DNA of 64,000 bases from Parasitella parasitica NRRL 2501 (GCA_025201805.1 MU619272.1:68515-132514); one strand, 5' to 3'. Positions 4,096-29,802 are shown, counted from the stretch's first letter. Made by a program: numbers and translations. Notes: generated by a model from the sequence alone, not told the origin.

Positions 4096-5736
4096 ATGGA
4101 TCGTCTTCCACTTGAGGTGTTCAACGAAATTACTTCCTACTTGACATGCAGAGAAAAGCAAAAGCTTTTGCTAGTTTGCCAATATTGGCACAAGGTGATA
4201 AAAAATGGCAACCTATTCAACAATTTCTCGACCAAAGGCCGCCCAAAGTTTGAAGCTTGCGCATCATTTTTCGAGCAGAACGAGACTCACAGAAAACAAG
4301 TTAAAATCTTACGCTTCACCAAGCCAGAGGCTAGTCTTGATTATATCCTGACTATACCTGAACGGTTTCCTTGTTTACTGGACTTTGTTTGGGCTAATTA
4401 TGGTGCTTCCGATTACAAAAATGGTGTCCAAATCGACAATGAAAAAGTTGAGCACTGGAGGAATCTCACTCGGTTTGGCGAAATCAATCGCTATCCTCTG
4501 TCGATAGATATTTTGAAATTTGGTGGATTTTGCAACCTGACTCAATTGACAATCAACTTTCATTTCAGCGATACCGATTGCAGACCGCTTGTTGAACAGC
4601 TTGCCTATGCTCCGAAGCTTAAGCTGCTGGACTTGGCGAGTGCTAAAATGACGCTGGTTGACTTGGAATTGTTACACTGCAACACACCGCAGTTAAATAC
4701 GCTTTACTTAAGCCAAATCATGCAAGAGCGAAGCGAGGCATTCGACGCGCAACTAGAGGAACAAGAGGCAGGAATGGGAGCCGTAAGTAAGGCCAACGCA
4801 TTGACAAGCTTAAGGGTCCGAAACATGAGATTGCCTGCTGGCGGTTTTGGACTTTTGGCTCCCTGGATGACATACATGGCTGGAAAGTACCGCCACATAG
4901 AACGTTTGACAATAGACGGCGTGGGAATGATAAGGGGAAGGCAGGATTACTACGAGAGTCTATTGGCAAACATTGTAACTGGATGTCCTCATCTCACATC
5001 ATATAGAGTCAACATATTCCCAATTACACCAACCCTCTTGGCGGCAATGGACAAGAGTGGCGCCCAATTGAAACGAATCGACCTGGTAGAAGACCCAACC
5101 GTGGAGCAATTGGGCCATCTAATGAGCTCTGGCCAGAGCGATTCTTTAGAGACAATCACTATGAATGACACACACCTCGATGCGAATCAACTTTTCAAAG
5201 AGTTGGAAGGCTTCTCGAAACTCAAGCATCTGGAAGTTGGAAACAGAGTTATGAAGCCTATCTTCCTCGATGCTGCGTTTCATGGATTAAAAAGTTTGGA
5301 GACACTCAGGTTATCGACATGGGACATTTGCCTTGAATCTCACTCTGTGAGCAGTGTTCAAACCAAGTTGAGAAGCCTGACGCTGGAAAAAGTAGTGATA
5401 AACAACGAAGACATGAACGTTATGTCGTTCATATCTAAAGCATGTCCTGATTTATCCAAGTTATCAATCCAAGGGCAAATCGAGGATCTAAACAAAGTGT
5501 TCAGAGTGGAATTCCCCCACCATTACTTTACCCTGATCAAGCTCGACATCTTGAGCAATGAATACTACAAAGTGAGCAATCACCACAAAACCGTATGGTA
5601 CAGATTCAAAGACAGACGCCTCCAGGAATCATTGCAAGACGATAATGCTGTCCTAAACGAACGACCACACGTTTCAATTGTGTACGAAGGCACAACTAGC
5701 TTGGACGTTGGAGGGACCGACATCCCAAACTGGTAG
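4096..5736 (+). CDS. F-box/LRR protein (intronless)
   Basis: 546-aa ORF with an N-terminal F-box (MDRLPLEVFNEITSYL...LLVCQYWHKVI) followed by LRR-like repeats. Confidence 0.85.
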   Translation: MDRLPLEVFNEITSYLTCREKQKLLLVCQYWHKVIKNGNLFNNFSTKGRPKFEACASFFEQNETHRKQVKILRFTKPEASLDYILTIPERFPCLLDFVWANYGASDYKNGVQIDNEKVEHWRNLTRFGEINRYPLSIDILKFGGFCNLTQLTINFHFSDTDCRPLVEQLAYAPKLKLLDLASAKMTLVDLELLHCNTPQLNTLYLSQIMQERSEAFDAQLEEQEAGMGAVSKANALTSLRVRNMRLPAGGFGLLAPWMTYMAGKYRHIERLTIDGVGMIRGRQDYYESLLANIVTGCPHLTSYRVNIFPITPTLLAAMDKSGAQLKRIDLVEDPTVEQLGHLMSSGQSDSLETITMNDTHLDANQLFKELEGFSKLKHLEVGNRVMKPIFLDAAFHGLKSLETLRLSTWDICLESHSVSSVQTKLRSLTLEKVVINNEDMNVMSFISKACPDLSKLSIQGQIEDLNKVFRVEFPHHYFTLIKLDILSNEYYKVSNHHKTVWYRFKDRRLQESLQDDNAVLNERPHVSIVYEGTTSLDVGGTDIPNW

Positions 5737-5904
5737 TTTATAACCCGGGAAAAACTCGTTTTGAAATGTGTAATACTAGCGCGGCAAGACAGCGTATTTC
5801 TCACCCAAAAGTGTGGCATAATCCGAAACACCGAATACTGCCATATAATAATAAACGCTTTCTCTTTTTGCAGCCTTCTCTTTTATACTTCATTCTTCTG
5901 CGGC

Positions 5905-9694: not shown

Positions 9695-9715
9695 CGCTTT
9701 TTCCCAATTGTTAAC

Positions 9716-12700
9716 ATGGCTCATGAAAGCAGACTACGAAATCAAATCGAGCTTTCACCTGCAGAAAATGAGGAGGCCAATTTGATATCTGATAGCCATA
9801 CACATTATGGTGCAACTACGGCATCCACCGCCTCAACCAAGAATTACGAAGAGCCTTGTTCCGAGGACAGCAGTGAAGAGATGATATCAACTGAAAATGT
9901 GGCAAGTAGAAAAAAGAAACGGCTCATAAAGCATCATCATCCCAAAAGACCAAAGCTAGTGTCGACTTTATCTCACATTGTGCGAAGTGCTCGACAATCC
10001 GAGGATGAAGACGATGCTAATAATGTTGTTGAGATGCCTTCGAACGATCTTATTATTCCTGAATTGGATCCAAAGTAAATAACGTTATGCTCTAGCTAAG
10101 AAAAAAAAAAGATACAATCACTTATATGAAACAGTGCAGACGAAGTCCGAGAATACATACCTTCTCCTTTGAAGCCAACAGATGGCTGGACATTGAGGAA
10201 GCACAGTGTGAATCTCAGTAACATAAGAGAAAACTACCGAGATGCACGCATTCGCGATAGGTAAAAGGGCCTAATATTAGTGTGAATGTATCTAAATGTA
10301 TGCATTTAGAAATGGCAATGTACCTTTAACTGGCATCGCAAAGGTCAAAAGCATACTCAAGTACGATGCTTATGTATCTGAAGCCAAAAGAATCCTTTTT
10401 GCCAACCGTAGTATCATTTTATTCGTGAGTTGCGCATGAAATTTCGTAGGCAGCAGCATTCTGAACTTCAGTTTGTATAGGTTTACACTGATTTGATTGT
10501 GGATGTTTTATTGTGCTTGGCTTATCTGGTTGAAATGAAGCAAGAAGCTGATATCAATGCATACCCTCCGTGGATGTATAAATGGAGGTCTTACGATCTT
10601 TGGTTTTGCTGCACAGTGTTAAGTCTATGGAACCTGGGGTCATTCATTATGCGAATATTTTTGACTGGAAGACCGTTCTCGGTCATGTTCAGTTTTAGGT
10701 CACTGATCGAAATTTTTACTACCTACCCATTTATAATATCATTGTTCATTGACAATGGTCAATATTTATACGGTAAGACACGCATTAACCGTATGCTCTT
10801 AAAGATGATACTGATGTCCATTTTGAATAGTGCCCTACTTTCTGCGAAGTTGGGTTTTGCTATTACGGATCAAAAGTATATTAAAGATCAAAACAAATTT
10901 ACTGATGACAGATAAGCCTGTGGATCCGTTGAAGTCGAAGCTGGTTCATTTAGTCGGTACGCTGGTGGCCTTATTATATAACGGCATGTCCGCATTTCAG
11001 TATTGTGAAGTGACATTTGGAGACATAAATTATTCGATATTGGACTCTTTATATGTTGTCATGGTTACGTTGTCCACAGTTGGTTATGGAGGTTTGTATA
11101 TTACCTAATCCTTGACATGCATACTAAAAAAAAAAGCACACATCCAACAGATATTACTCCTCATACACAAGGCAGTAGAATTGTCATGATGCTGCTCATC
11201 GTCATTTCATTGGCCGTGCTGCCAAGTTTACTGGCTGATGCGTTAAATACCCTTCGAAAAAGAAATGGTAATCTCGAAAAGAATTGGCATACAAAAAGTA
11301 CTAATATGTATTGTATCTCAAGATTGGGGAGGCTATGTATCTGAATCACACATGCCGTTCATCCTTTTGGTAGGCGTATTCCACCCAGAGCAAGTGACAG
11401 AGATACTGGATGGATTCTTGAATACGGTAATTGTAAAAAGTATCAAATATTTGAACGACTGGTGTTAAGATATGGCGCATTTCAGGAGAACACAGAACCT
11501 AATTTGAATGTGGTCTTTTTGGATATCAATAGACCCAACGAAGAATTGAAATTTCTGGAAAGAAATTCAATGTGGGGTCATCGTATCCAGTTTATACATG
11601 GATCAGTGTTAGATGAGCAAACGCTCAAGAGAGTCCAAGCAAGGTCAGCAGCAGCAATATTCACGTTGTCAGATCAACACGCAGTAGATCCTTTAAAAGA
11701 GGATGAAAGGAACACAGTTCGTTTATGGTCTTTACACTGTTACACTGTAAGCCATAATGTAAATATTTATACCTACAATCTGTCTCCATCTACAGCCATT
11801 TATCAAAAAATGGCAAAAGAAATTATATGCGTTCGTGAATTCAAGCAGTACTTGTTAGCCATGAATTGTCGATGCCGAGGTGCCTCTACGCTACTAACAA
11901 ACCTATTACATCAAAGAAGACCTATGGACCACTATGACGAATCATGGCAGGCTCAATATGGTAGGCAATAGAAGTTGGGCAACAGGGTAGAATCTAACAG
12001 TTACAAAAAAAATAAAAATAGATGATGGTTCATGTAATGAAATCTACATGGACAGGCCATCTGAATCGCTTGTCAATTTGTCTTTTAAAGAAGCTGCCTG
12101 GGTTGTATATACAGAATGCCAGGTTATTCTGTTTGGAGTCAAAACGCGCTTGAAAAATTGTGAACATCGCGAGATACTACTGAATCCAGACAACAACTAC
12201 ATTATAAAACATGATGATCTTTGTGTTTACCTATGTGAAAGCCCAAGGGAGGTGGGCGATATAAACAGCTTGGTAAGCAAATATTTACAAACACTTGAGC
12301 TAATTCTAACACGATGGTAGAAATACGACTATGTTCGATCAAAAGTGGACGCAATGAAGATACGAAGAAACGCTGAGGCCAACCTCAAAGCGTCAAGAGT
12401 ATCTGAGCCACCTTATTCATCTGCTTCAAGATCGTCTTCGTTTCAAAATGAATTGCTGCACTCGTTACGAAACAGCACAAAGCTACATACCAGTGAACAT
12501 GACACACCAGATTCTGCCCCTGCTTCACCCAATTTTCATTTAGTTCAAAATACGTGTGCAAACAATAGTAATCAAGTCGCTCAGTTGGAACTACCTCAAA
12601 CCATTAACAATGATTTACTGCTCTACCCGCCTCCTTCAAGACCTCCATCCCCAGGCCTTCATCATTCTGTATCCAACGAATCGAATCAATCTCGATCGTC

Positions 12701-14128
12701 CTCTGTATACCAGTCCCCTCGCCACCAGACTTTTGCACTGTGTAAATTACCAACACCTCGCCTTGCTCTATTGACTGGCAACAGAAAGCTGCTCACGCGC
12801 TTAGGCCAGCTACCAGTTATCAATAGTGCAGATGTGGAAATCGAATCATCCCCCGTGTGTTATTTGCTTCCTAAATCTGCTACATTACAAGAATTGACTA
12901 TTACCTCAGCACAAAATATGAATGGGCATATACTGGTTTGTATGCACCACAAGGTTTCCAATATCTTTAAATTCATATACAATCTTCGGTAACGACGTTT
13001 TTAGAAAAAAAAAAAAAAAAAAAAAAAAAACTATTATTCATCAATGGCTGGATGCATGTAGGTCACCACAATTGAAGTCAAACGAGCTAAAGGACATTGT
13101 GTTTCTGTGCACATCTCTACCGAGCGAAAAAACGTTTGAACTGGTCTGTCGCTTTCCCAAAGTTTATTTCATGGTTGTAAGTATATTCTGGCCTATATTC
13201 TCCCAATTTTTTTTTTTTTTTTTTTGAAAAAACCCACACGTTAATACTATTTTAGGGTGATTGCCAACACCCAGAAGATTTAATCAAGGCAGGCGTCAAA
13301 AGAGCAAAGCAGGTGGTGGTTATGAGGTATGGCATTAAACATTCGAGCAAAAAATTATGGTATTAAAACGGGTAATAGCGAACGAGAGTGTCTTGATCAA
13401 TACCAAAGAAGCTCAGACAGCCCAGCCATGTAAGGACACTTTAATTAAATACTAAGAGTCAGATACCAACATCAATTGCGTAGTATGACGAGCCATTTAT
13501 TGGATCTCTTACTCCAAGATAAACCGCATGACTCCTCTCGCATCGTAAATTTAGGTGAGACATCATATATGAAACCAAACAGCTGCAGAATACTTAAAAA
13601 TGTTTCTTTTGAAAAGTCGAGAAATCAAACATTAGATTCATGCATTTACTGCAAGGCAAAGATGTTGCAGAAGAAGTAGACGTTTTTTACACGCCCGCCT
13701 ACGCTGCTGGTAACGTTGTAGTGGACAGCCTATTGAGCAATGTCTTGTTGAGCCAAACGTACTACAAATCAGACATTGTCTCCGTCATAAAAGCCCTTTG
13801 TGGCATGCCTGGCCCTCTGTACGATAAAGACACTGCCCATATTTTGGAATGTGGCACTAAAATACGGCACAACCTATTTCAGAATTCTCGCCATTTATCG
13901 CTCTCTGTTATGCCTCCCTGTTTTATAGATAAGAGCTTTGCGTTCTTGTTTGAAACGCTTGTCATGGACCACGAAGTGCTGCCCTTGGGTATTTTGCGTG
14001 CACCAGATGAAAATATGGGAAACGAGCTATCGTTTGTGTACACAAATCCTGTTTCCTCTCTGATTATGAAAAGATCTGACAAAATTTATTTGCTGGCTTC
14101 CCCTGGGTGGAGCTTTTTTTCCAAGTAG
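9716..14128 (+). CDS. Slo/BK-type potassium channel (TM segments, pore, RCK domains), multi-exon
   Basis: Pore TLSTVGYG|DITP across an intron. RCK-like motifs FIHGSVLDEQTLKRV, LAMNCRCRGASTLLTNL, GHILVC and YTPAYAAG; C-terminal VYTNP. Confidence 0.85.
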
Positions 14129-14665
14129 AAAGCATGGACAATACGGTATTTGTGAATAAAATACTCTTGCTGCTTACCGTATTATATGCGCATATAATAT
14201 ATATTGGCATAAAATTGACAGTATAAAAAAGTTTAGACTTTGAGTACACCAAAAGCTTTGATTTGATTGTCAAAAATCAGGTTTTGTCCAAACTGCAATT
14301 TTTCATGAGGGGTATACCTTATGCAAAATGACCAAAAAACCAAGGATTGAAAAAAGTTGAAAGGATAGAACTAAAATTACAACCTGAACAAAAGCACCTT
14401 TTAAAGCCTGACTTGTACTGGATTTTGTGACAAATTCTCACAAATCGCAGAGGTTGTCATGGAATTACCGTATTTTCGTAAAACTAAAAAATAAAGGCAT
14501 ATTGAGTTTTGTCTAAGACTGATATCCGAAAGCAACTTCGACATGTCTGCCAACTAGTCCAACACGTTGTCTTTAAACGATGACTCGTCCTCATATTGAG
14601 CTGCTGAGATCAAGATCTGCGGCAATGCATCCGTCCTGAACAAATGTTCTTTAAGAGACTTGTAT

Positions 14666-14877: not shown

Positions 14878-15414
14878 TTAGGCAGTTCTTAAGATCAAAT
14901 GCACACCGCTATCAGTCCAGATGGGCTTGCTTAATTCGCCCACTTGAAGAGCAAAAGTAGCATCTTCGAAAGGCTTCTGCATTTGGCCTCTCTCAAAATA
15001 ACCCAAATCACCACCACGCTTTGCACTTGAGCAATCAGAATAGTTGGTAGCTAATGCAGACAATGTTTCTTCGCCAGCTTCAATCTTTTTCTGGTATTTT
15101 TCCAAAATTTCTAATGCTTCTTCTTTGCTGCGAGTAATATTTTCCTCTTTCCATGAGCTAGGTCTTCTCGAGTCTTTGCTTTTGACCAGCAAATGACTAG
15201 CTCTCACTCGATCGATTTCCCCTTCCACTGTAGGTGCATCCCAACGCGATTCTTTGGTAACTGTGTTGAAGAAATAATCCTTGTCGTAAGTACGGGAATG
15301 ACGCACAACCCAATTCTCTGGCAGCTCCTACATGATGTGTCAGTATAGTGAGCTTTAGTGTGTTTATGCTGCTCTGCCATGTAATTATACGCGACTCTAT
15401 CATGAACTTACCAT
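14878..15414 (-). CDS. ESS1: Peptidyl-prolyl cis-trans isomerase Pin1/Ess1 (WW + parvulin)
   Basis: ATG|GTAAGT intron (15411-15328), then [21 protein letters not shown] (WW domain) and [30 protein letters not shown] (parvulin domain). Confidence 0.95.
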
Positions 15415-16728
15415 GTTGTTCCGGGTTCTAGGATATATTATTAATCGCTATGCTATAGCTGCATTATATCACTATTTACCTTCAAACAAGTTTATGTGAT
15501 ATCGGGATATAACCTCAATTATTTTTGAAAAATAACGAGATCAGTGTAAAGAAGCGCTCATGTTCAGCATGTTGCATCTCCCTTAATAACTTTTTCAAGT
15601 GTCGCCTATTGAAGATTGGCAGTGCAAGTTGGCCAATGAAAAACTCTTTCTCCTGTCAAAAGAACACTGTCTCAAGGCATAGCTGGTGATGGCTGCTCTA
15701 AAGGTCATATAATGAGTGGGCTTCTATTCTTTATCTTTTTATACTTTTATACATAAGATATCAAATAATAATTTGATCCAATTCGATGCTATCCATTGTG
15801 CCTCTAGTAGAAGTTCGAGATCGGTTTGGAGTTTGTTCGGAAGTAGGTGTTAATCTGCGCCTATCAACATCTGCTTTGTCTTTGATTTCCACAGCATCGC
15901 CCTTTTCATCAAAACCCAGCATCAAGCTTGCATTCGTTGATAGCCTTTCTGCATCCACAAGGCCATCTTCATTCAAAGCAGGCATATTTTTGACAAATTC
16001 CCGTTGCGGAGTAAATGTGCCTGATTGCCTAGGAGCTGGTTCACTTTTTTTCTGGATCTTCAAACAGGGTAGGTTTTGAATGAGGTACTATAGGTGGTCT
16101 TCCAGGGCTATCTAGTGGAGCATCGCCTTTGAGCTGTTGTTCTTGACGAGTATCTGCTTGTGCAGAATTACGGCGCATAATGCTCAGCAGTGTACGACGT
16201 AGAGTTGATGCTGTATTGCCATGATCTTCCTGATGCCTTGCATCACCGAACACGATAGAACGAGCGGTTGTCTGCTATAATAGCAGATCGAGAAGCACTT
16301 GATTTCTGGGCTCGATTTATATCTTTGGTAAAGATGGTATCATAATGCGTCAATAAATCGCGCAAAAGTTTCTTGAGATGGCGATCATGTATATTTACAG
16401 CAGATGTTACTCTTGATCTCATCAAAACAAATGCAAACATGATGATCAAATGATTGAGCAAGCCTTCGCTCTTTGTTTGTCTGAGCAACCTATGTGCAAA
16501 TACTTAGTCTACCTTTCAAATTCACCAGTGCATCGAGCTCATTTGAACAGATGATGCGATAGCGCTTTCAATGTGTGGTAATTAGGAGATGGTCAAGTAG
16601 CTAGCAGTTTATTTACAGACATCAATCGGCTTTCGACATCCTGCTGATTTGCATACAATATTTTGACAGGGTCGTACAAATCAAAAGTCAACAGACATTC
16701 AGGCAGTTCCAGCAGGTAAATTCGAATA

Positions 16729-17390
16729 CAGTGCTTCCACTCTCAGTTTACCGAATTTTTGAAAACACTGCTCACTTTTTTGAGAATAAATAACCATCTT
16801 TTACAAATATTTTGACCAACTTCTGGTCAAATAAAGTACAAAGGTTCTTTATTTGAGCATTTAAGGAAACGATTTATGGAATGCTGAATGAAATCCTGCA
16901 AATGTTTAACCGGAACTTTCAATAACCCTTAAAGTGAGGTTTCCACTTCAGTCAATTTACTTACATCTTCTGACGCTATCCTTCAAAACTTTCCAAATCT
17001 GCTCGATAGAGTTGAGCTCAGGAGAATAAGGCGAGTATCCTCGTTCAATAATTACAGGATCGGTGATATTTCGCTCTTTTTTAGAAGCTGCTTCGTCGAT
17101 ATCAGGGTCTTTGGGCTCTTGTTCTTTCACCTATTTGCGGAGATTCGTCAAATTTGTTAATGAAACGATGATTCTACAACAACGAAGGCCGACGCTTTGC
17201 CAGATTCGTCTACAATCCTACCTCTACTATCTTTGTGAAAGAAATTCATTTTTATGAATTACAGTTCTGAAGAAATGTAAATATCAAAAAGTCGGTCAAA
17301 GTATTTATATGATGTGGTTAATTTATTTTCGCAAACCTGGTCAAATTAACTTCTCGCACAAGCGGGCAGTGTTTTCAAGTGGAAGCACTG
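16729..17390 (-). mobile_element. Non-autonomous Tc1/IS630 deletion derivative, copy A (right TIR internally deleted)
   Basis: TA-CAGTG...CACTG-TA ends. The minus strand retains transposase relics PYSPELNSIEQIWKVLKD and HLQDFIQHSINRF.KCSNKEPL. Confidence 0.88.
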
Positions 17391-17556
17391 TATTTTGCAT
17401 TCATCATCATACCATTTCACTTTCATTAGTTAAAACTATATAAACCCCCGTGTGTAATATTATTTATATTTTAATCTTCTGTAAAATTTTCGGTTAATTC
17501 ACAACCTTCTTTTCAAAGGAATTTGTATTATCATTCTGTCCAGAGGAAGAAGCAGT

Positions 17557-17730
17557 TTATTGTAGGCTGCGGTTTTTTGGTCCCATTTTAAGACAATTGT
17601 CAAACACGTTCACAGAATGTTGATTCATGTACAAGTGAATAGGGACAACTCTTCTATCATATGCCTCCTTGGCTACTACTCTTGCATTAAGATCTTCATC
17701 TCCAGTGATTTTACTTCTCTTGACAAAGAA
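17557..17730 (-). mobile_element. Relic of a different Tc1-family transposase C-terminus
   Basis: VKRSKITGDEDLNARV..EAYD..V.PIHL..NQHSVNVFDNCLKM.P parallels the Tc1 C-terminus in copies A and B (VRR..K...ET...QHSINRFPKCSNKEPL). No TIRs found. Confidence 0.5.
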
Positions 17731-18099
17731 GAATGTAGCATGTTGCATTCAGACATTCTTGCATATGTGTAAAAATCGACGAAAGCGACTACGAAATCAA
17801 TGATTCAGGTAGGAACTGCCGTAGATACTTGTTGGTATCAGTCTTTAATGGATATTGCGAGATATTGTCTTGCTGTGAGTTTCCGATATAATACTTCTAA
17901 ATCTGCCGTTAACCATGGTATGGCCATGAAATTAAAAAAAATAAAATATAAAAGATGATTGTGATATTTTATAATCAGTATAATATATAATGCGCAATAC
18001 ATCAGGCAGCCTCTACATAAACAGTTTATCGTCAGATGGACAAAACAAATTTCATACACCAGCTTATTCGGCATTTATGTAGGAATATGTCCAAGGAGT

Positions 18100-18455
18100 G
18101 CGATACGATCAAGTCGTAAAGATACACTTAAACATAACGGCTGGGGCGTGACTCAATCATACAAAGAGTTTATCTGATCCTGCCATTAGGCCTTTGCAGA
18201 GCAAATAAGCAAGGGAAAACCAATACGAGCCCGTCGTAAAGATAAACTCATGCTCACCAAGTAACCTTGTAGTAATATACCTAAGAAGTGTTATACGACC
18301 AGGCCGTAAAGATAGACTTGAGTATAAAACTACGGGTGCTACTTTATCATACAAAGAGTTTCTGACCGCCCATTAGGCCTTTGTAGAGCAAACGAACAAG
18401 AGGAGAGCAATACGATCTAGTCGTAAAGATACACTCATGCTCATCGAGTAACCCT
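18100..18455. repeat. Diverged ~190-bp tandem duplication carrying four TACGA-N5-TCGTA-AAGATA dyads
   Basis: Dyads start at 18104, 18224, 18294 (one mismatch) and 18411. The block ATCATACAAAGAGTTT...GTAACC occurs twice. Confidence 0.85.
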
Positions 18456-18615
18456 AATGTACAGCATTTCCTTAGTTACTTACCAGAGTGTGAAGATGGA
18501 AAATGTTAAAAAAAAATATCGCAATCAGAGTTTTCTTTTGTTTGATGACGTTGACACCCTATAAGTAACTCTGATCTTCTTTCATGCATTTTCATCTTGA
18601 CAACTGATAAGCAAC

Positions 18616-20763
18616 ATGTCAAGCGCAAACATTTCCTTACTATGTGAAGCAAGTAAGTCTACAAGCAAACAATCGAATTTACTTCTTATAATTTTTTCCA
18701 AAGGTGAAGATGAGCTGTTTACATTTTATGAAAACTACTTCAAAATCACGCACGTCAAATCATGGAAAGTATTGGACTTGTTTAAAGCATTGCTGGCTGA
18801 ATACAAGCCAATTTCATACGATTGCGTGTCAATTTTTGTTCATACTTTCAAACGATTTGGACGAAATTATGCTTCCAATGATGTCAAGATACAACATACC
18901 ATGAATAAATTGTCAGATAAGTGCGACAGTGTTATTAACTCTGACTTGGCAAGAACGCTCGTGGTGAAAGAACATGTAGAGGTAAATATTTTATTTCACA
19001 TATATTTTACATATATTCATCTAATATTCTCTATCATGAACATTTTGGACACAGCAATCGAGACTTTTATATTGTATTCATGTTGTTGATGATGTATTGA
19101 AGGACAAGACCAATGTGATAAATCAAAATGTAGTACATCCAACTACTTCTCCATCATCCAACCGAACATCAAGTTTAAAAGAAGTGACCCCACAATCATC
19201 TTCATCGTCAAGCACATCAGCAGTGGACCCACAATCATCTATATCGTCAAGTGCAGCAGCAGCAACGACATCCACATCATCAAATAAACCATCAATGCTG
19301 AAGAGAGTCGACAATGATGATCCATCACCTTCATCTCAAAACAAAAGAAGAAGTCGTTTAAGTGTAAAATATGTCAAAGGGTTAAACTTGGATGAAAAGT
19401 TACAATGCTTAGCTGATTATTAGTAAATTTAATTACTAGAATCCCTGTATTCAGCTGCTGTTATATATTAACACATTTCTCCTCTAGTGGTAATGATAAT
19501 ATGTTGGACCTCGTATTCCCTGGTGTTATTCCTGTTCGTTTCGCAAGTATCATGAAGCGAATTTCCGATGATTTACAAATGCCACTATCACTTAAGTACA
19601 CTGAAAACGAAAGGTCAATTCTCATCAAGGTCATCAAAGCAGCATCATTGCATGATATAGAAGTAATTGTGAAGGATATCCCGCTGGTTCCTCGTGTTGG
19701 TCTTCAATCTTATCTGTACATTGCTTTATCAAAACTGTAGGTTAACTTGCTTATTTTCTGCTTGATGAACGTTAATCGTAATAATTGTTTATTATCAGGC
19801 TATTACTTTATCAACGCGATCAATTACAAGACACTACTCATAAGGAAGGGTGGTACCAAGGGCATTTGTATGCTGATGTTTTTGATGCTGTTTTCCTATT
19901 TGATCCTTGCTATGTTACAAAGAGGTAACATATATCAAGACACCCTAATATGGAAGGGGAGGAGCTAACATGCTGTCCGATTCATTTTTGTAGGACTGAA
20001 TGCCATGCGACGACTATCAAATACTTGAAAAAGATGAAACAGATTGCTAGTGATGAAAAGGACGTCAAAGTAGATCTTATCTTATTTAATACTCAATTAG
20101 GTGATATCTTTTCATGTGAGGACAAACCAGCTGAAGCAAAAGAAGCAGATGTTGAAGCAGATATCAAGAAAGCCAAGGACCTCCGCCAGAAGCGTCTCTT
20201 GTATATCAAGTCCATTCTGCCCCATTCATCACTGATCAATTCCGTTGAAGTTATCAGCTCGCAGTTTTGGGGTTTATCTTTAACAATTTATGGGTCAAGA
20301 ATGACCGAGAAAGGAACCATCATTCATTATCAAAAGGGTGTAGCAAGTCTTTCCCCAATATTCAGCATGCCAGAAGTAGCTCACTTTTTACTCACAGTCA
20401 TGTCTTTACAAGTAAGTGCAGATGCCACTTTCATTATTTTCATTCATAATTGCCATTAATACGTTTTTATAGCGAGCAATTGTATTGGATTTGAAGAAAC
20501 TTACAGCAATATACCAAGTTGGCCTTGAAGACTCGATCAGCTTCTTATCATCTAATAATGATGGCATGTTTTATCGTGATGACTCCCCTATTTCAGATAA
20601 TACTTCAGACACCTCGATCAGTAGCGATATGATGGGAATGGAAAAATTACGTAGAATATTGAAGCAAACTACTGACAAGGTTAATGCAATTGGTCTTGAT
20701 GACGACTTGTTAAGCTGTGAAGACTGGGAAGATCTCCTAGTGCTTGATGAAAATGACAGTTGA
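18616..20763 (+). CDS. Putative PD-(D/E)xK restriction-endonuclease-fold protein (CR-REase-like), 7 exons, ~588 aa
   Basis: Exons 18616-18652, 18704-18981, 19055-19422, 19488-19736, 19799-19924, 19994-20411 and 20473-20763 splice (all GT..AG) into an open 1767-nt frame. Motifs HKEGWY..RTECHA..KVDLIL..SCEDK. Confidence 0.7.
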
Positions 20764-21207
20764 ATTTGCTTGTTGTCCTCTCCCTTTCTCTGTTTTCTTT
20801 GCGGTTTTATATACCTATATTAATCACTACCACCATTATGATAAACATTGTTGTCGCCATTATATATACCATTATTATATCATTTTAATCATCAAGGTAC
20901 ATGTCTCTGTCATATGAATAAATCATTTAGTATCGAGGAGTAATTGAAACGCGCACAATCAGGATTGCATTCAGATTTTTCAAATTTGAATTTTTGAACA
21001 TTATCAACTGTGCTGTTCCTGGAACCAGATTGTCTCTAATAATTGTATAAAAACTTCAAGTAACAAGCCCTGATTGCAACATGGCTCACATACAACATTA
21101 TTCGGAAGGTGCCCCTATATCTTCTCAGATTCAAATTTTTGAAGGCAAATATTCATATTTTACCGGTTTATACTGTATACTCCTGCATAGTTTGTATATT
21201 CTATATA

Positions 21208-21947
21208 CAGTGCTTCCACTCTCAGTTTACCGAATTTTTGAAAACACTGCTTACTTTTTTGAGAATAAATAACCATCTTTTACAAATATTTTGACCAACT
21301 TCTGGTCAAATAAAGTACAAAGGTTCTTTATTTGAGCATTTAGGGAAACGATTTATGGAATGCTGAATGAAATCCTGCAAATGTTTAACCGGAACTTTCA
21401 ATAACCCTTAAAGTGAGGTTTCCACTTCAGTCAATTTACTTACATCTTCTGACGCTATCCTTCAAAACTTTCCAAATCTGCTCGATAGAGTTAAGCTCAG
21501 GAGAATAAGGCGGGTATTCTCGTTCAATAATTACAGGATCGATGATATTTCGCTCTTTTTTAGAAGCTGCTTCGTCGATATCAGGGTCTTTGGGCTCTTG
21601 TTCTTTCACCTATTTGCAGAGATTCGTCAAATTTGTTAGTGAAATCAACAACGAAGGCCGACGCTTCTTTGCCAGATTCGTCTACAATCCTACCTCTATT
21701 ATCTTTGTGAAAGAAATTCATTCTTATGAGTTACAGTTATGAAGAAATAAAAAGATCAAAAGTCGGTCAAAGTATGTGTATGATGTGGTTAATTTGTTTT
21801 CGCAAACCTGGTCAGATTAGCTTCAAACATCCGGCCAAATAAGTCTTCTTTTTATGGGCAATTTAGTCTCGCACGAGTGGGCAAATTTTTTTTAAAAAAA
21901 ATGGGCAGTGTTTTTGAAAATTCGGTAAATTGAGAATGGAAGCACTG
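21208..21947 (-). mobile_element. Non-autonomous Tc1/IS630 deletion derivative, copy B (both TIRs complete)
   Basis: Highly similar to copy A and TA-flanked. The minus strand has the N-terminus MNFFHKDNRGRIVDESGKEA followed, after a large internal deletion, by YPPYSPELNSIEQIWKVLKDSVRR. Confidence 0.9.
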
Positions 21948-24029
21948 TAATGTTTGCTAACTGATGTAAACTAAACTTTTCCAAGGCATCCGTAAGACTT
22001 GAACCTGCTAAACTATTGATAATATTGGACCATACATCCTCAATAAGCGGATCCGCCTCTTCGCTTCTTGTCATAGATATACCTTGATTTTTTTTTGTTA
22101 CATAGTGTTACATAATCGGTAATTTCTTGCATACCTACATCAATGATTTTGAGGCCCTTGTTGACAATTAGGGGTACATATGAACCATATATTTGTACCA
22201 CTTCCTCCAATGACACGCCAAAAATCTGATCTATAGCAGCTCCATAGTAATAGTTTTAATATACCATAGGCCGAGGACAGTACTCTCCAGTTTTGAATTG
22301 TTCAACAGTACAGTGGATTTCCTGCTCTGGTTTTAATGTTTCTTGGAAAAGTGCGATACGATTGTATGTTTCTTCAAATATGGGCAGTGTTCCACTTAAC
22401 TCTGTTGACATGGTTATAAAAACTTGAAAACACCATTAATATATCTAATAATGTGATGGCAAAAACTTTGAGTTAACTGAGCTCCTTAACATGCTTTAAA
22501 GCATTGATTCTGTCCACTTCCAACCGTTGTATCTCGTCGAAATGCGTAATCTATACGTTATAATTCAACATCATGCTTAAACTGAGATTATTATTATAAA
22601 GTCGTACCAACTTTTCCTCGAGCGATATTATCTTTTGGTTGACATCCATTATCTTTTTTTCTGTACACTGCATCAATCATTTCTACTTGCGTTTTTGTAG
22701 CGGAATCCACAGTGGGGGTTTTCAAGGCTTGCAGCTTCCAAAAAGTCCTTGAATTGCACTGCTAGCAATGTTAGTACTGGGCGAGGAAGAAGGCGCCTCC
22801 AAGGTCATGCTAATCTCAGTAGAACTATCAGTAGCGTGAAACTGATCATCGTACACACCTCTTTTGATACGAGTCTTTCGTAAATGCGGTTCTACGACAT
22901 TCTGCTGCACTTCGTAATACTGATCTAGATCAAACCCGCTATTATCTTTGGAAGCACATTACAGGAATTTAAGCGCCACCAAATGCTTGCATATTTCTGT
23001 CGCCTCACTATCCAATGCTACGTCCCCTTGCTGACGAGGGGATGCACAGTAATCTCGGATTCATTTGAATATGTGCTTCCCTCGGTATCGTTGAGATGCT
23101 TTTGCACTTGGTTTTGTTCCCTGAATCATCTTTTGCATTCGGATAACTGCTCTTGCCACTTGTCGATAAGGAAGTACTGTGGATTTGCCGAGCCGAACTC
23201 CACCACGATCCACATTAAGCTCTGAGGTAACTGAACTCGATCTCTGTCTACCACCCACAAACTGAGCATCTTCCAGATCATTATCTTCCTCTTCTTGAAA
23301 GCCAAAAGGCAAAGGTGGACGAAAATCCGGACATTTTTGTTCCAGAGCTCGGCACCGAGACCAATATACCGATCTTGACAACAAGGCAGCTTGAGCGTAA
23401 TGTTTAAACTCTTCAATTTCTTCCTCCAACTTTGATCTTTTTGCCCTGTATTTGTTCCTTGAATAATCGAGAGAAATTAAGGAGTGGCTCCGACACATCT
23501 TGGGCTATTATACCTGCTCTTAGTCTATAGCAATGTGCAGCTTCAGTGCTATCAGCACATATCATGTCAAATGCACTTTTCAAGCTGGCATTCATGGTGG
23601 ATTCTACCAAATCCGAGGCCGATTCCACGGCTGAGGAGAGATCAGATACCATCAAGTCGGCGCAAGCGTTTTCTGCGTTGATTCGATTCTGCAAGTATGT
23701 GGTTATGGTATCATTCTCAAGAGCAGATTTTGACAGTTTGTCATGAAGAGCATAGAGACCCGTGGTATAATTGGGAATAGCCTCTGTTGAGGCTACGGGA
23801 GACCAAAAGGAGTTGCTAGAACTGTCTTGCGTAGAGTTCACCTTATTGAAAAGTATAGGAAGAAAAAGCTTCATTTTTTTTTTCATTTACGAGACAATTA
23901 TGAACGGAAACAAAATACTTTGTTTGGTCAGGTAATTTGTAAGACAATGTTGATGTGGTACAATACACTTGCATAGCTTGACTAAATCGTCCTTCAGTCG
24001 AAACTGCGCTTCTTTGATTACTATACCAT

Positions 24030-26883: not shown

Positions 26884-29802
26884 TATATAGAAAATGAGCT
26901 TAATCTACTATTTAGTCAGCCATGGGTGTATATATTAGTAGAGTCTTTGAAAGCTCTGGATCAGATTTATGGTATCCATGTAATCATATGGTATTCAAGT
27001 TTAATGGTATATTGTCAATACTACAATTATAAACAATACTAATCACACAAATTAGTTGACTGCAGGTGATTGCTTATTTCTAGTTTACTAGAAAAAAGAC
27101 ACGTTTGAAGTAGCAATGCCTATCATAGCGACGTACCAAGGGGGTCGACTATAAAAAACATGTCAAGTTTTGATCAAATAAAAGTTATAAATCAGATGAC
27201 ATTATACCCGCATAATGTTTTTGACGTTCGATCTCGGTTCTGCGATTCATTTAGCAGACGTTATTAAGACCAAGTGTCTGAAAATGTCTCTTAATTATAA
27301 AATTAAAAATTGTTTTTGCACATAACTTTTGATAAACATGTCACCTGAAGGTTATCAAGTTATACTCAGATAAAGCCTTGATCATATCTGTGGAATCGGT
27401 ATAAATTGTTATATGGATTCACGGAAAAAAATTATAATAAAAAAACAATAAAGTCAACTTGATAAAGGTATAGGTTTTATTATCAAATCGACAAGTGTAT
27501 AAAGCTCCCGTTCATCTACTGGCCAGGTAGATGAACCTTTATATTGTGGATAAATGTTCTATTCTCGCAATTTAACATGTACGACAATACTGCGTAACTA
27601 GCATCTTAACTTTATGCTAACCAACATATCAGCAGACTCAAGATAACTTAAATCTATTTGAGTGAGGAGATCGACTTTACCCGAGGTAATACCCTGATCA
27701 ATCTTCTATGCGAAGATTATTAATATCGATCCATAAACGTATATCATTCCTTGTATAGTCTTATCCAGTCTATATTAATAGTACATGTCTGAGTGTATAT
27801 CACTTGGTATTCATCTTAGCATATATCGGTATATGTAGCATGTCTATAGCATGTCATAAGCATATCTATAGCATTACACATATTGTACAAGTCTGCAGTA
27901 CATGATGTATCTGTAGCTAGTATCATGGATATAAGTATATGTCTTGTAGTGCGTATCTAGAAACTGGGAATACGCATCTGAAGCATAGATCTTATATAGC
28001 ATTAGCTCGTAGCATATACTAAATCTAGTAAATGTCTAAGGCTCGTGTCGAGATATAAGTATCAGGCTATAGCGTCATCCATTCTAACGGCGCCGTCTCT
28101 AGCTTATATCTTATATAGTATAAATCTGTATTGCACATCTTATTATCTGTGCGCATATGTAGTTTATATCAATTTAAGGTAACTGGATGAATCTAGAAGT
28201 AGAATGCAGATCATCATAGTGAATGTATTTCACAATATCAGTATAATAAAAGGTTTAACAGGCTTTATTTTTCTATTTATCCAAGGCCAATCAGCGATTA
28301 TCCCATGAAATTTTGATAGATATTAATAAAAAAACAATTTATAGAATTTTCAAATAATCATACCACTTGTTTGTTACGTTAATAAGCAATAATTCCCATC
28401 AATACATTTCTTCAGCTCTCTTACAAAAATTTTATAACCTATAAAAAAGGAGGAAGTAACTTTTAATAAGCTCCAAAAACAAAAACTTCAATTGCTGATA
28501 GGTTACTATAAAGAGCAAAATAAACACTGTCTTATGCGCCATAAGTACAGGCATGATCATCGCTATCTGAGCATAACTTGATTTCCACTGGGAAATGTCT
28601 CTATCAAAAGTTATCTGCAAAAACACTTTCGCGTTTTTGGTGTCGGAATTTTAAATTTAAAATTACGTGTTTTTATTGGCTCAGGCTTGCTCAAAGAGAT
28701 TTTTTGACTTCTTATCAATCCTAATATCAGGTATCTAATGGGGATATACTCATCTAATGTGAGTAAGGTTTGAGATCTTGTAGTGTATTTTATTATGGAC
28801 AGATAATGAGATTATAGTTGGTATCATTTCGTTGAAATCATGTACAAAACTACTTTTCATTTTCATGATTTCAAACAGTTGTCCATAGGTTATTCTAAAG
28901 AAGCTGTAGAGCCTTGATCGAGCTTAGTGACTATAGCGAGAACCCAGCGCTATGGAATAAAAGCATTTCTATCCTTCATGAAAATAGATTAATAAAAACG
29001 ATTAGTTTACCACTAGATACAAACCATTAATGTTTTTGATCGATAAAAGTTGTCTATAATTTATAGAATAAATTTTGTCAATGAAGATTATATCACAGTA
29101 TTAGTCAGGGCAAGACCTGTTTATATCTAATCAGCTAATCATTATGAATGTGAATCATTCATTAATAAGTTTAGCTTTACAATTTAGATTAAGTAGGACT
29201 CAAACAGATGGTTTCTTATACAACCATTCTGTCGATTACTTCTATTTACCACATAGAATAAGCGGCGACATTTAATCTTGAATCTTATCAGGAATGGTTG
29301 CCATGACAACCGAGGAGAAATGATGTTAACCATTGTTTGTTATGGATACAGCAATAAACAATGGATTTGTTTTGTCTCAATATAAAAGCCTTGGCTAATA
29401 TAGTTTGAAAAATGGCAAAGTTGATTGATATAATCTTGTGTTGTCGTGGTAAATTACAATATTATATTTGTAGCAATACTACTCTAATATTATCAGCCTT
29501 ATGCCAGTAGACAACTGTTTCAAGTGAAATTAATTGTGAAAAATAAACAATATTTCTTGACTTCAGCTGTTGTTATGTTCTCAAGCAACTTCTTGCTCTT
29601 TGCGTTTACCGGTTATTACGATCGCACCCAACCTGCTATTTGTTATTACAGACAGCATCCGATGACGTGAATTTAAACAGAAATTTTGTTCCAAACTCTC
29701 AGAAATTAACAATAATATTGTCATCGAACAAAGGTTTTAGAAAAAAAGAAAGTGTACAAAGCTGGTTTCTTTATTATTTATATAAAGATATATGATGGAT
29801 AT

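Follow-up and report, generated by a model that had tools for sequence, protein, structure and literature searches.

A putative Tc1-family composite transposon with an intact nuclease-like gene in a decayed RhoGAP gene of a mucoralean fungus

In a 64,000-nucleotide stretch of a mucoralean genome (hereafter the window, C36:68515-132514 in an assembly of 32.8 Mb and 450 contigs), we analyzed a 5.2-kb block in which two internally deleted transposons of the Tc1 type, modules A and B, bracket a 3.8-kb cargo with an intact, intron-containing gene (Table 1). The entire block fills one TA site in the coding sequence of an F-BAR/RhoGAP gene, and this site is empty in a related fungus, Parasitella parasitica. 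We are moderately confident that the block represents a naturally formed Tc1-family composite transposon (macrotransposon), which moved as one unit by means of its two outer ends. The structure of the modules, the cargo, and the host gene was read from the assembled sequence.

The modules lie in direct orientation, and each starts with CAGTG, ends with CACTG, and has a TA on each side. The original prediction, made from the sequence alone, had described them as direct repeats around unrelated DNA, and both their limits and the adjoining TAs were found unchanged on re-reading. Beside a TA, CAGTG or CACTG occurs only at the four ends of the terminal inverted repeats (TIRs), and the ends of the cargo itself carry neither TIRs nor repeats. 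The block has outer ends (16727-16791 and 21885-21949) that are inverted repeats of each other over 65 nt, with 86% complementarity; the TIRs of module B itself are likewise 65 nt long and are 85% complementary. Measured along module B, the two modules are 97.9% identical over positions 51-440 (8 differing sites, with a longest exact common stretch of about 150 nt) and 88.5% identical over positions 441-640.

Three deletions are present in module A, and one of them takes 19 nt from its inner right TIR. That this TIR is about 19 bp short while both outer TIRs are complete had been predicted and is the case, but the reading of the short form as a loss in A alone did not hold up, since a Rhizopus delemar copy has the same 19-nt-shorter form at one of its ends, where it adjoins a TA. 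Private decay of A is thereby ruled out, and the form common to A and R. delemar points to a shared allele, not necessarily to decay after insertion. A fragment of the C-terminus of a DDE transposase is kept in both modules on the minus strand. It is represented by a 57-residue open reading frame (ORF) at 16957-17130, which matches Pfam DDE_3 (E value of 2.2e-5, with a score that does not reach the gathering score) and can be aligned with the C-terminal end of the full-length Tc1 transposases in the genome, with the ...YSPELN.IE..W... block in common. Having a TA duplication, common TIRs, and a DDE remnant, modules A and B are non-autonomous Tc1/mariner (IS630-Tc1-mariner) elements.

When position 16728 was joined to 21950, that is, when the insert and one TA were removed, the minus strand read ...SLHQLANIIRIYLLELPECLLTFDLYDP..., and the frame restored by this junction was ...LANIIRIYLLELPE.... 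The orthologous locus, reached via the Pin1 gene of the window, is on Parasitella parasitica contig LN731193.1 (L075), where an annotated RhoGAP of 894 amino acids adjoins Pin1. This locus is colinear with that of the window at 77-83% identity; it aligns to 26884-21948 and 16728-14842 and breaks at 21948/16728 with a 2-nt overlap, corresponding to one TA. Since the alignment breaks at a single common TA, the site in Parasitella is an empty one and all 5.2 kb belong to a single insertion. The junction and the orthologue together bear out the earlier proposals that deletion of the insert plus one TA fuses the RhoGAP frame and that the whole block occupies a single TA, and the Parasitella contig supplies the empty RhoGAP site that had been anticipated. 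No empty-site candidates were obtained with the 60-residue junction ORF as a query against other assemblies, and an exact look-up of the window's Pin1 protein returned no record.

The host F-BAR/RhoGAP gene is a long-dead, decayed pseudogene. Its 3' part contains two frameshifts inside one 275-residue Parasitella ORF and an in-frame stop in ...KLLAT*PSP..., and its 5' part has at least six in-frame stops, one frameshift, and a 12-residue deletion relative to the Parasitella frames, which gives for the gene at least seven in-frame stops (e.g., at Parasitella W, R, E, and L), at least three frameshifts, and the deletion. With this many lesions, either the insertion is old or the target gene was already dying. 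A RhoGAP paralogue is present on contig C76. Directly downstream of the dead RhoGAP lies an intact Pin1-type gene with WW and rotamase domains (14878-15306, minus strand), and the Parasitella synteny runs on through a BK-type channel gene (9698-14191).

Table 1. Features of the 5.2-kb block and of the pseudogene around it (positions in the window)
Feature	Position	Strand	Remark
F-BAR/RhoGAP pseudogene, 3' part	15761-16726	-	colinear with Parasitella L075 8644-9632
Left TA target-site copy	16727-16728		read directly; single TA in Parasitella
Module A, 662-bp internally deleted Tc1-type element	16729-17390	+	outer left TIR of the long form; inner right TIR 19 nt shorter
Inner TA adjoining the right end of A	17391-17392		read directly
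Cargo, 3.8 kb	17393-21205	+	single-copy in the genome; unrelated to the modules
Two tandem units of ~190 bp	18078-18453		families D3 and D4, 73-83% identical; 5' part of the cargo
Cargo gene, intact, intron-containing, PD-(D/E)xK nuclease-like (predicted)	18616-20763	+	tblastn, R. delemar protein P0231 residues 1-557
Cargo coding blocks, approximate	18616-18993, 19106-19420, 19489-19806, 19809-20411, 20473-20760	+	from alignment
Inner TA adjoining the left end of B	21206-21207		unoccupied in Rhizopus delemar
Module B, 740-bp internally deleted Tc1-type element	21208-21947	+	both TIRs of the long form
Right TA target-site copy	21948-21949		read directly; single TA in Parasitella
F-BAR/RhoGAP pseudogene, 5' part	21950-23886	-	colinear with Parasitella L075 6723-8645; weak Pfam FCH match

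The cargo gene is colinear (tblastn) with the whole of the 557-residue R. delemar protein P0231. Its exons were used as separate queries, the limits of the coding blocks, taken from the protein alignment, being approximate, and codons were compared by a script on the exon-wise alignments. Over 543 codons the gene has no stops and shows 91% amino acid identity to P0231, with a synonymous divergence (dS) of 0.10 and a ratio of nonsynonymous to synonymous divergence (dN/dS) of 0.44. It had been predicted to be intact and to contain introns, and this colinearity without stops agrees with both points. That the gene has stayed open amid the lesions of the RhoGAP argues, from the sequence comparison, that it is under purifying selection and was maintained while the gene surrounding it decayed.

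The protein encoded by the cargo gene matched no Pfam family and belongs to an unnamed Mucorales family. An AlphaFold model was built on P0231, its R. delemar orthologue, with a 26-member family alignment (predicted local distance difference test score, 79). Foldseek alone gave a weak match; with VIA-align, model residues ~270-470 matched the nuclease domains of BpuSI, DrdV, and HsdR at Z scores of 10.1, 10.0, and 9.0, respectively, and several further restriction-endonuclease-like proteins also matched the model, the scores being about 8-10 overall. Across the 26 family members, residues D349, E364, and K366 show no or almost no variation, and the window's copy has all three. From the core alpha-beta fold of the model and the D...(D/E)xK motif, the cargo protein is predicted to be a PD-(D/E)xK restriction-endonuclease-like protein.

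Eight further paralogues of the cargo gene (33-54% identity) are found in the genome, and the one on contig C35 has ordinary orthologues across Mucorales. No modules lie beside the eight paralogues in the stretches fetched, and for these stretches flanking by modules of the A/B type was rejected. Assignment of the cargo family to the Rpn-like passenger family was also rejected (no BLASTP match; hhalign probability of 0.2%). In the 5' part of the cargo, positions 17964-18216 have an 88% identical counterpart in a Logan contig, where it lies upstream of a homologue. The region of the tandem units (17964-18480) is inverted relative to its copy in the Logan contig (88% identity; the gene there is only 81% identical) and is 72% identical to a sequence on C201; the 190-bp units may constitute a small repeat that is either mobile or regulatory. 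The Mucor lusitanicus homologue (JAAECE010000008.1, L086 10045-10905) comprises the 3' half only and has an in-frame stop and a frameshift, which suggests that the cargo subfamily decays in some Mucor genomes.

Sequence comparison lends good support to a horizontal exchange of both the cargo gene and the Tc1 subfamily between a Mucoraceae lineage and R. delemar/R. arrhizus. A single cargo exon compared with 1.8 billion representative proteins retrieved a 95% identical protein, whose cluster includes proteins of R. delemar and R. arrhizus. At the DNA level, cargo positions 18574-21208, introns and 3' flank included, are 90.5% identical to R. delemar (95% in the center), and 17393-18573 has no Rhizopus match. 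Modules A and B are 89% identical to two R. delemar copies located near the Rhizopus gene. Ordinary genes of the two genomes are far less similar: Pin1 is 68.8% identical in DNA, its proportion of synonymous differences (0.79) being saturated, and an M20 peptidase gene is 66-75% identical. For scale, the dS of Pin1 between the window and Parasitella is 0.56. In a tree of the exon 4 region (156 columns, midpoint root), the Rhizopus copy and the cargo group as sisters (support, 97/85), and this pair is nested (100/98) among Mucor bainieri, M. lusitanicus, M. velutinosus, and a Logan sample. The Mucor and Logan homologues show 71-81% DNA identity to the cargo, the level expected for vertical divergence within Mucoraceae. 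It is this excess of similarity over ordinary genes, together with the nested position in the tree, that points to horizontal exchange, and by the same comparison the exchange took place long after the Mucoraceae and Rhizopus lineages had split. Its direction was probably from Mucoraceae to Rhizopus, judging from the short alignment. Since the cargo and the modules are equally over-similar to R. delemar, they have a history in common that is distinct from that of the surrounding genome. This signal, shared by cargo and modules, the death of the RhoGAP, and the nuclease-like nature of the cargo are additions to the original prediction.

In R. delemar RA 99-880 (CH476732.1:2920724-2942481), the cargo homologue is bracketed by two copies of this Tc1 module in inverted orientation (977-1753 and 18002-18758). 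These modules, 16 kb apart, form the inner ends of a more extensive inverted duplication, which also repeats a gene for 391 amino acids, and the interval between them is filled by fragments of the reverse transcriptase of a long interspersed nuclear element. The arrangement may be a transposition-linked rearrangement.

The genome of the window also contains full-length Tc1 copies of about 1.7 kb (on C187, C14, C33, and C27), and the terminal 53-57 nt of the modules are 86-91% identical to the ends of these copies. Modules A and B are the only near-full CAGTG modules in the genome, where they are accompanied by two end fragments, one of 241 nt on C84 and one of ~160 nt on C70. A CAGTG start was found in A, in B, in the Rhizopus copies, and in these two small fragments; over positions ~50-300 of module B, the best other match to A and B in the genome is 74-76% identical. 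The C84 fragment was considered as a solo module left behind at the donor, which proved unsupported, as its flanks match none of the relatives of the cargo. A 374-bp segment of the window (27861-28234), an unclassified repeat, is 95% identical to the DNA beside the Tc1 end fragment on C84.

Two other Tc1-ended elements of this genome enclose DNA other than a transposase gene. The first, of 2.9 kb (C161:31790-34708), has Tc1 TIRs that start with CGGTG, placed around an ORF for a 455-residue Rpn-like PD-(D/E)xK protein. The other, of 5.25 kb (C85:53929-59181), has inverted arms (501-969 and 5285-5753) of 469 nt that carry Tc1 end sequences and are 99% identical; it encloses 4.3 kb with short ORFs only, some of which have CCHC-like motifs. 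The C85 element is another young Tc1-ended carrier of non-transposase DNA.

Under the composite reading, two sister copies of a non-autonomous Tc1 element would have come to lie 3.8 kb apart in direct orientation around the nuclease-like gene, each at its own TA, with local hopping as the likely cause of this arrangement. A Tc1 transposase acting in trans would then have brought together A's left end and B's right end. The inner right end of A, being 19 nt shorter and devoid of a subterminal stretch, may have favored the use of the end of B. The block would have been excised whole and pasted into one TA in the F-BAR/RhoGAP exon sequence, with duplication of that TA. We infer both the action of a transposase and which transposase acted. 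The genome holds two near-full modules and one copy of the cargo, which is precisely what a single cut-and-paste event would leave. When A and B are compared with the Rhizopus copy over positions 51-440 of B, they have 26 differences in common, versus 5 and 3 private ones, and such sister copies would be produced by a local hop across the gene before the joint mobilization.

Several observations weigh against this interpretation. The resident full-length Tc1 copies start with CTGTG and not with the CAGTG of A and B, and a matching autonomous partner of the CAGTG type, such as the original prediction had suggested looking for, was not found in this genome, the resident copies being only 88-90% identical to the modules over the terminal 55 nt. 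The search of the genome also yielded neither a second copy of the unit nor a donor site with a footprint. The same module-cargo-module unit, which the original prediction had suggested looking for at other TA sites, did not turn up in this genome, the cargo being single-copy. The candidate native locus, indicated by synteny with M. lusitanicus, is near 65 kb on C52, downstream of the FYVE gene. Metagenome scans for the junction of the cargo with B and for the right end of the cargo were blank. The short inner TIR of A may still be active, as the R. delemar element with the same form has this end beside a TA. A and B have diverged unevenly, by 2% in the left part and by 11.5% in the right part, and there is an excess specific to A; this pattern implies later conversion or repair. 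Finally, the TA at the right end of the cargo is unoccupied in R. delemar, where no modules flank the gene at that TA, and the DNA past it (54 nt, as well as the whole 16-kb interval) has no match elsewhere in the genome of the window. With this TA empty and the flanks unlike, the Rhizopus copy is not an identical composite, and the horizontal event is not to be equated with the composite one. Carriage of the functional, host-maintained nuclease gene by a Tc1 composite between the Mucoraceae and the R. delemar/R. arrhizus lineage is, for us, a tentative and rather doubtful proposal.

The same final structure, single TA pair included, would also result if a solo module had occupied the RhoGAP TA first and the cargo and a second module had been added by homologous recombination, either from a circle (the cargo with one module, released when two direct modules at another place recombined) or by ectopic gap repair on a module-cargo-module template. 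Integration of a circle is expected to give direct repeats, and the uneven identity of A and B (97.9% versus 88.5%) reveals past recombination or conversion in the modules. This course of events, however, needs a third module or a second cargo, and the genome has A, B, the C84 and C70 fragments, and one cargo; it also takes several rare steps instead of the one of composite transposition, and we consider it unlikely. In the assembly, the left 440 nt, over which A and B are almost identical, with an exact stretch of up to ~150 nt, might have led to false threading of a single-module RhoGAP with a separate, tandem or circular module-cargo sequence. For such an artefact, however, the path would have to switch twice, and a cargo-module molecule of circular or tandem form would be needed; A and B have 8 differing sites in their common part and diverge strongly in the right part, and the 236-kb contig is otherwise colinear with Parasitella. 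Of all the explanations weighed here, we give this one the least credence.

Only marginally more credible, and still very improbable, is the explanation that the cargo is a selfish nuclease-encoding unit which inserted by itself at a TA between adjacent Tc1 modules, or that the parts were inserted separately. The predicted PD-(D/E)xK nuclease-like protein, the patchy subfamily with its horizontal transfer and pseudogene copies in Mucor, and the nuclease-like passenger enclosed by the Tc1-derived element on C161 are all in keeping with such a unit. The cargo ends, however, lack repeats and TIRs, its matches with the copies in Rhizopus, Mucor, and Logan do not stop at shared end points, and the eight paralogues examined have no module nearby, one of them having ordinary vertical orthologues. 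Composite transposition through the outer ends of A and B thus remains the explanation we favor.

Bacterial composite transposons, such as Tn5 and Tn10, are pairs of insertion sequence elements that move cargo genes and represent the classic bacterial route. The block is like them in having two complete elements around unrelated DNA, outer ends that set the unit, and one target duplication; it differs in being eukaryotic, in its direct-oriented, non-autonomous modules with transposase supplied in trans, and in the introns of its cargo gene. For the IS630 family, a first composite, Tn630-NC1, was claimed only in 2024, together with an "asymmetric TIR" model (PMC11544213), with which the block shares a degenerate inner end. 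By analogy, the short inner end of A fits both this model and the logic of the Sleeping Beauty "sandwich," in which a Tc1-family transposase moves two complete elements with disabled inner ends (Zayed et al. 2004, as presented in PMC4229213). As presented there, the sandwich likewise holds its cargo between two complete elements, and the disabled inner ends force the use of the outer ones; it is engineered and head to head, whereas the block is natural and head to tail and has one inner end altered.

Macrotransposition, or alternative transposition of linked elements, has been reported for maize Ac/Ds (Huang and Dooner 2008, cited in PMC3744419; PMC4270019). By these accounts, a cut-and-paste transposase likewise uses the ends of two linked direct elements and moves the DNA between them; the maize elements are of the hAT type, make 8-bp duplications, and were followed genetically in real time, whereas the event proposed here is of the Tc1/mariner type, duplicates a TA, and is deduced from a fixed old insertion. 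Fanzor-bearing Tc1/mariner elements and the Rpn-like element on C161 resemble the block in that Tc1-type ends surround a nuclease-like gene other than a transposase gene, an arrangement that recurs in this genome; they differ from it in being single elements with one TIR pair, where the block has two whole modules with their own TIR pairs. In fungi, Tc1/mariner elements are the transposons most often transferred horizontally, and such transfer is reported to be especially common in Mucoromycotina (bioRxiv 10.1101/2025.06.16.659975). The Tc1 subfamily described here conforms to this pattern, being about 89% identical across lineages whose ordinary genes are synonymously saturated; what sets the present case apart is that a non-transposon gene gives the identical signal.

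Our literature searches gave no example of a naturally occurring composite of the Tc1 family whose cargo is an intact, intron-containing gene under selection. The locus described here offers a clean anatomical case: its target site is empty in a related fungus, its cargo gene is apparently under selection within a dead host gene, and a horizontal signal is common to cargo and transposon. Tc1 composites could account for the passage of non-transposon genes from one species to another in Mucoromycotina. If a Tc1 composite did carry the gene between the two lineages, pairs of non-autonomous Tc1 elements would constitute a route for horizontal gene transfer in fungi that goes beyond the transfer of the transposons themselves.

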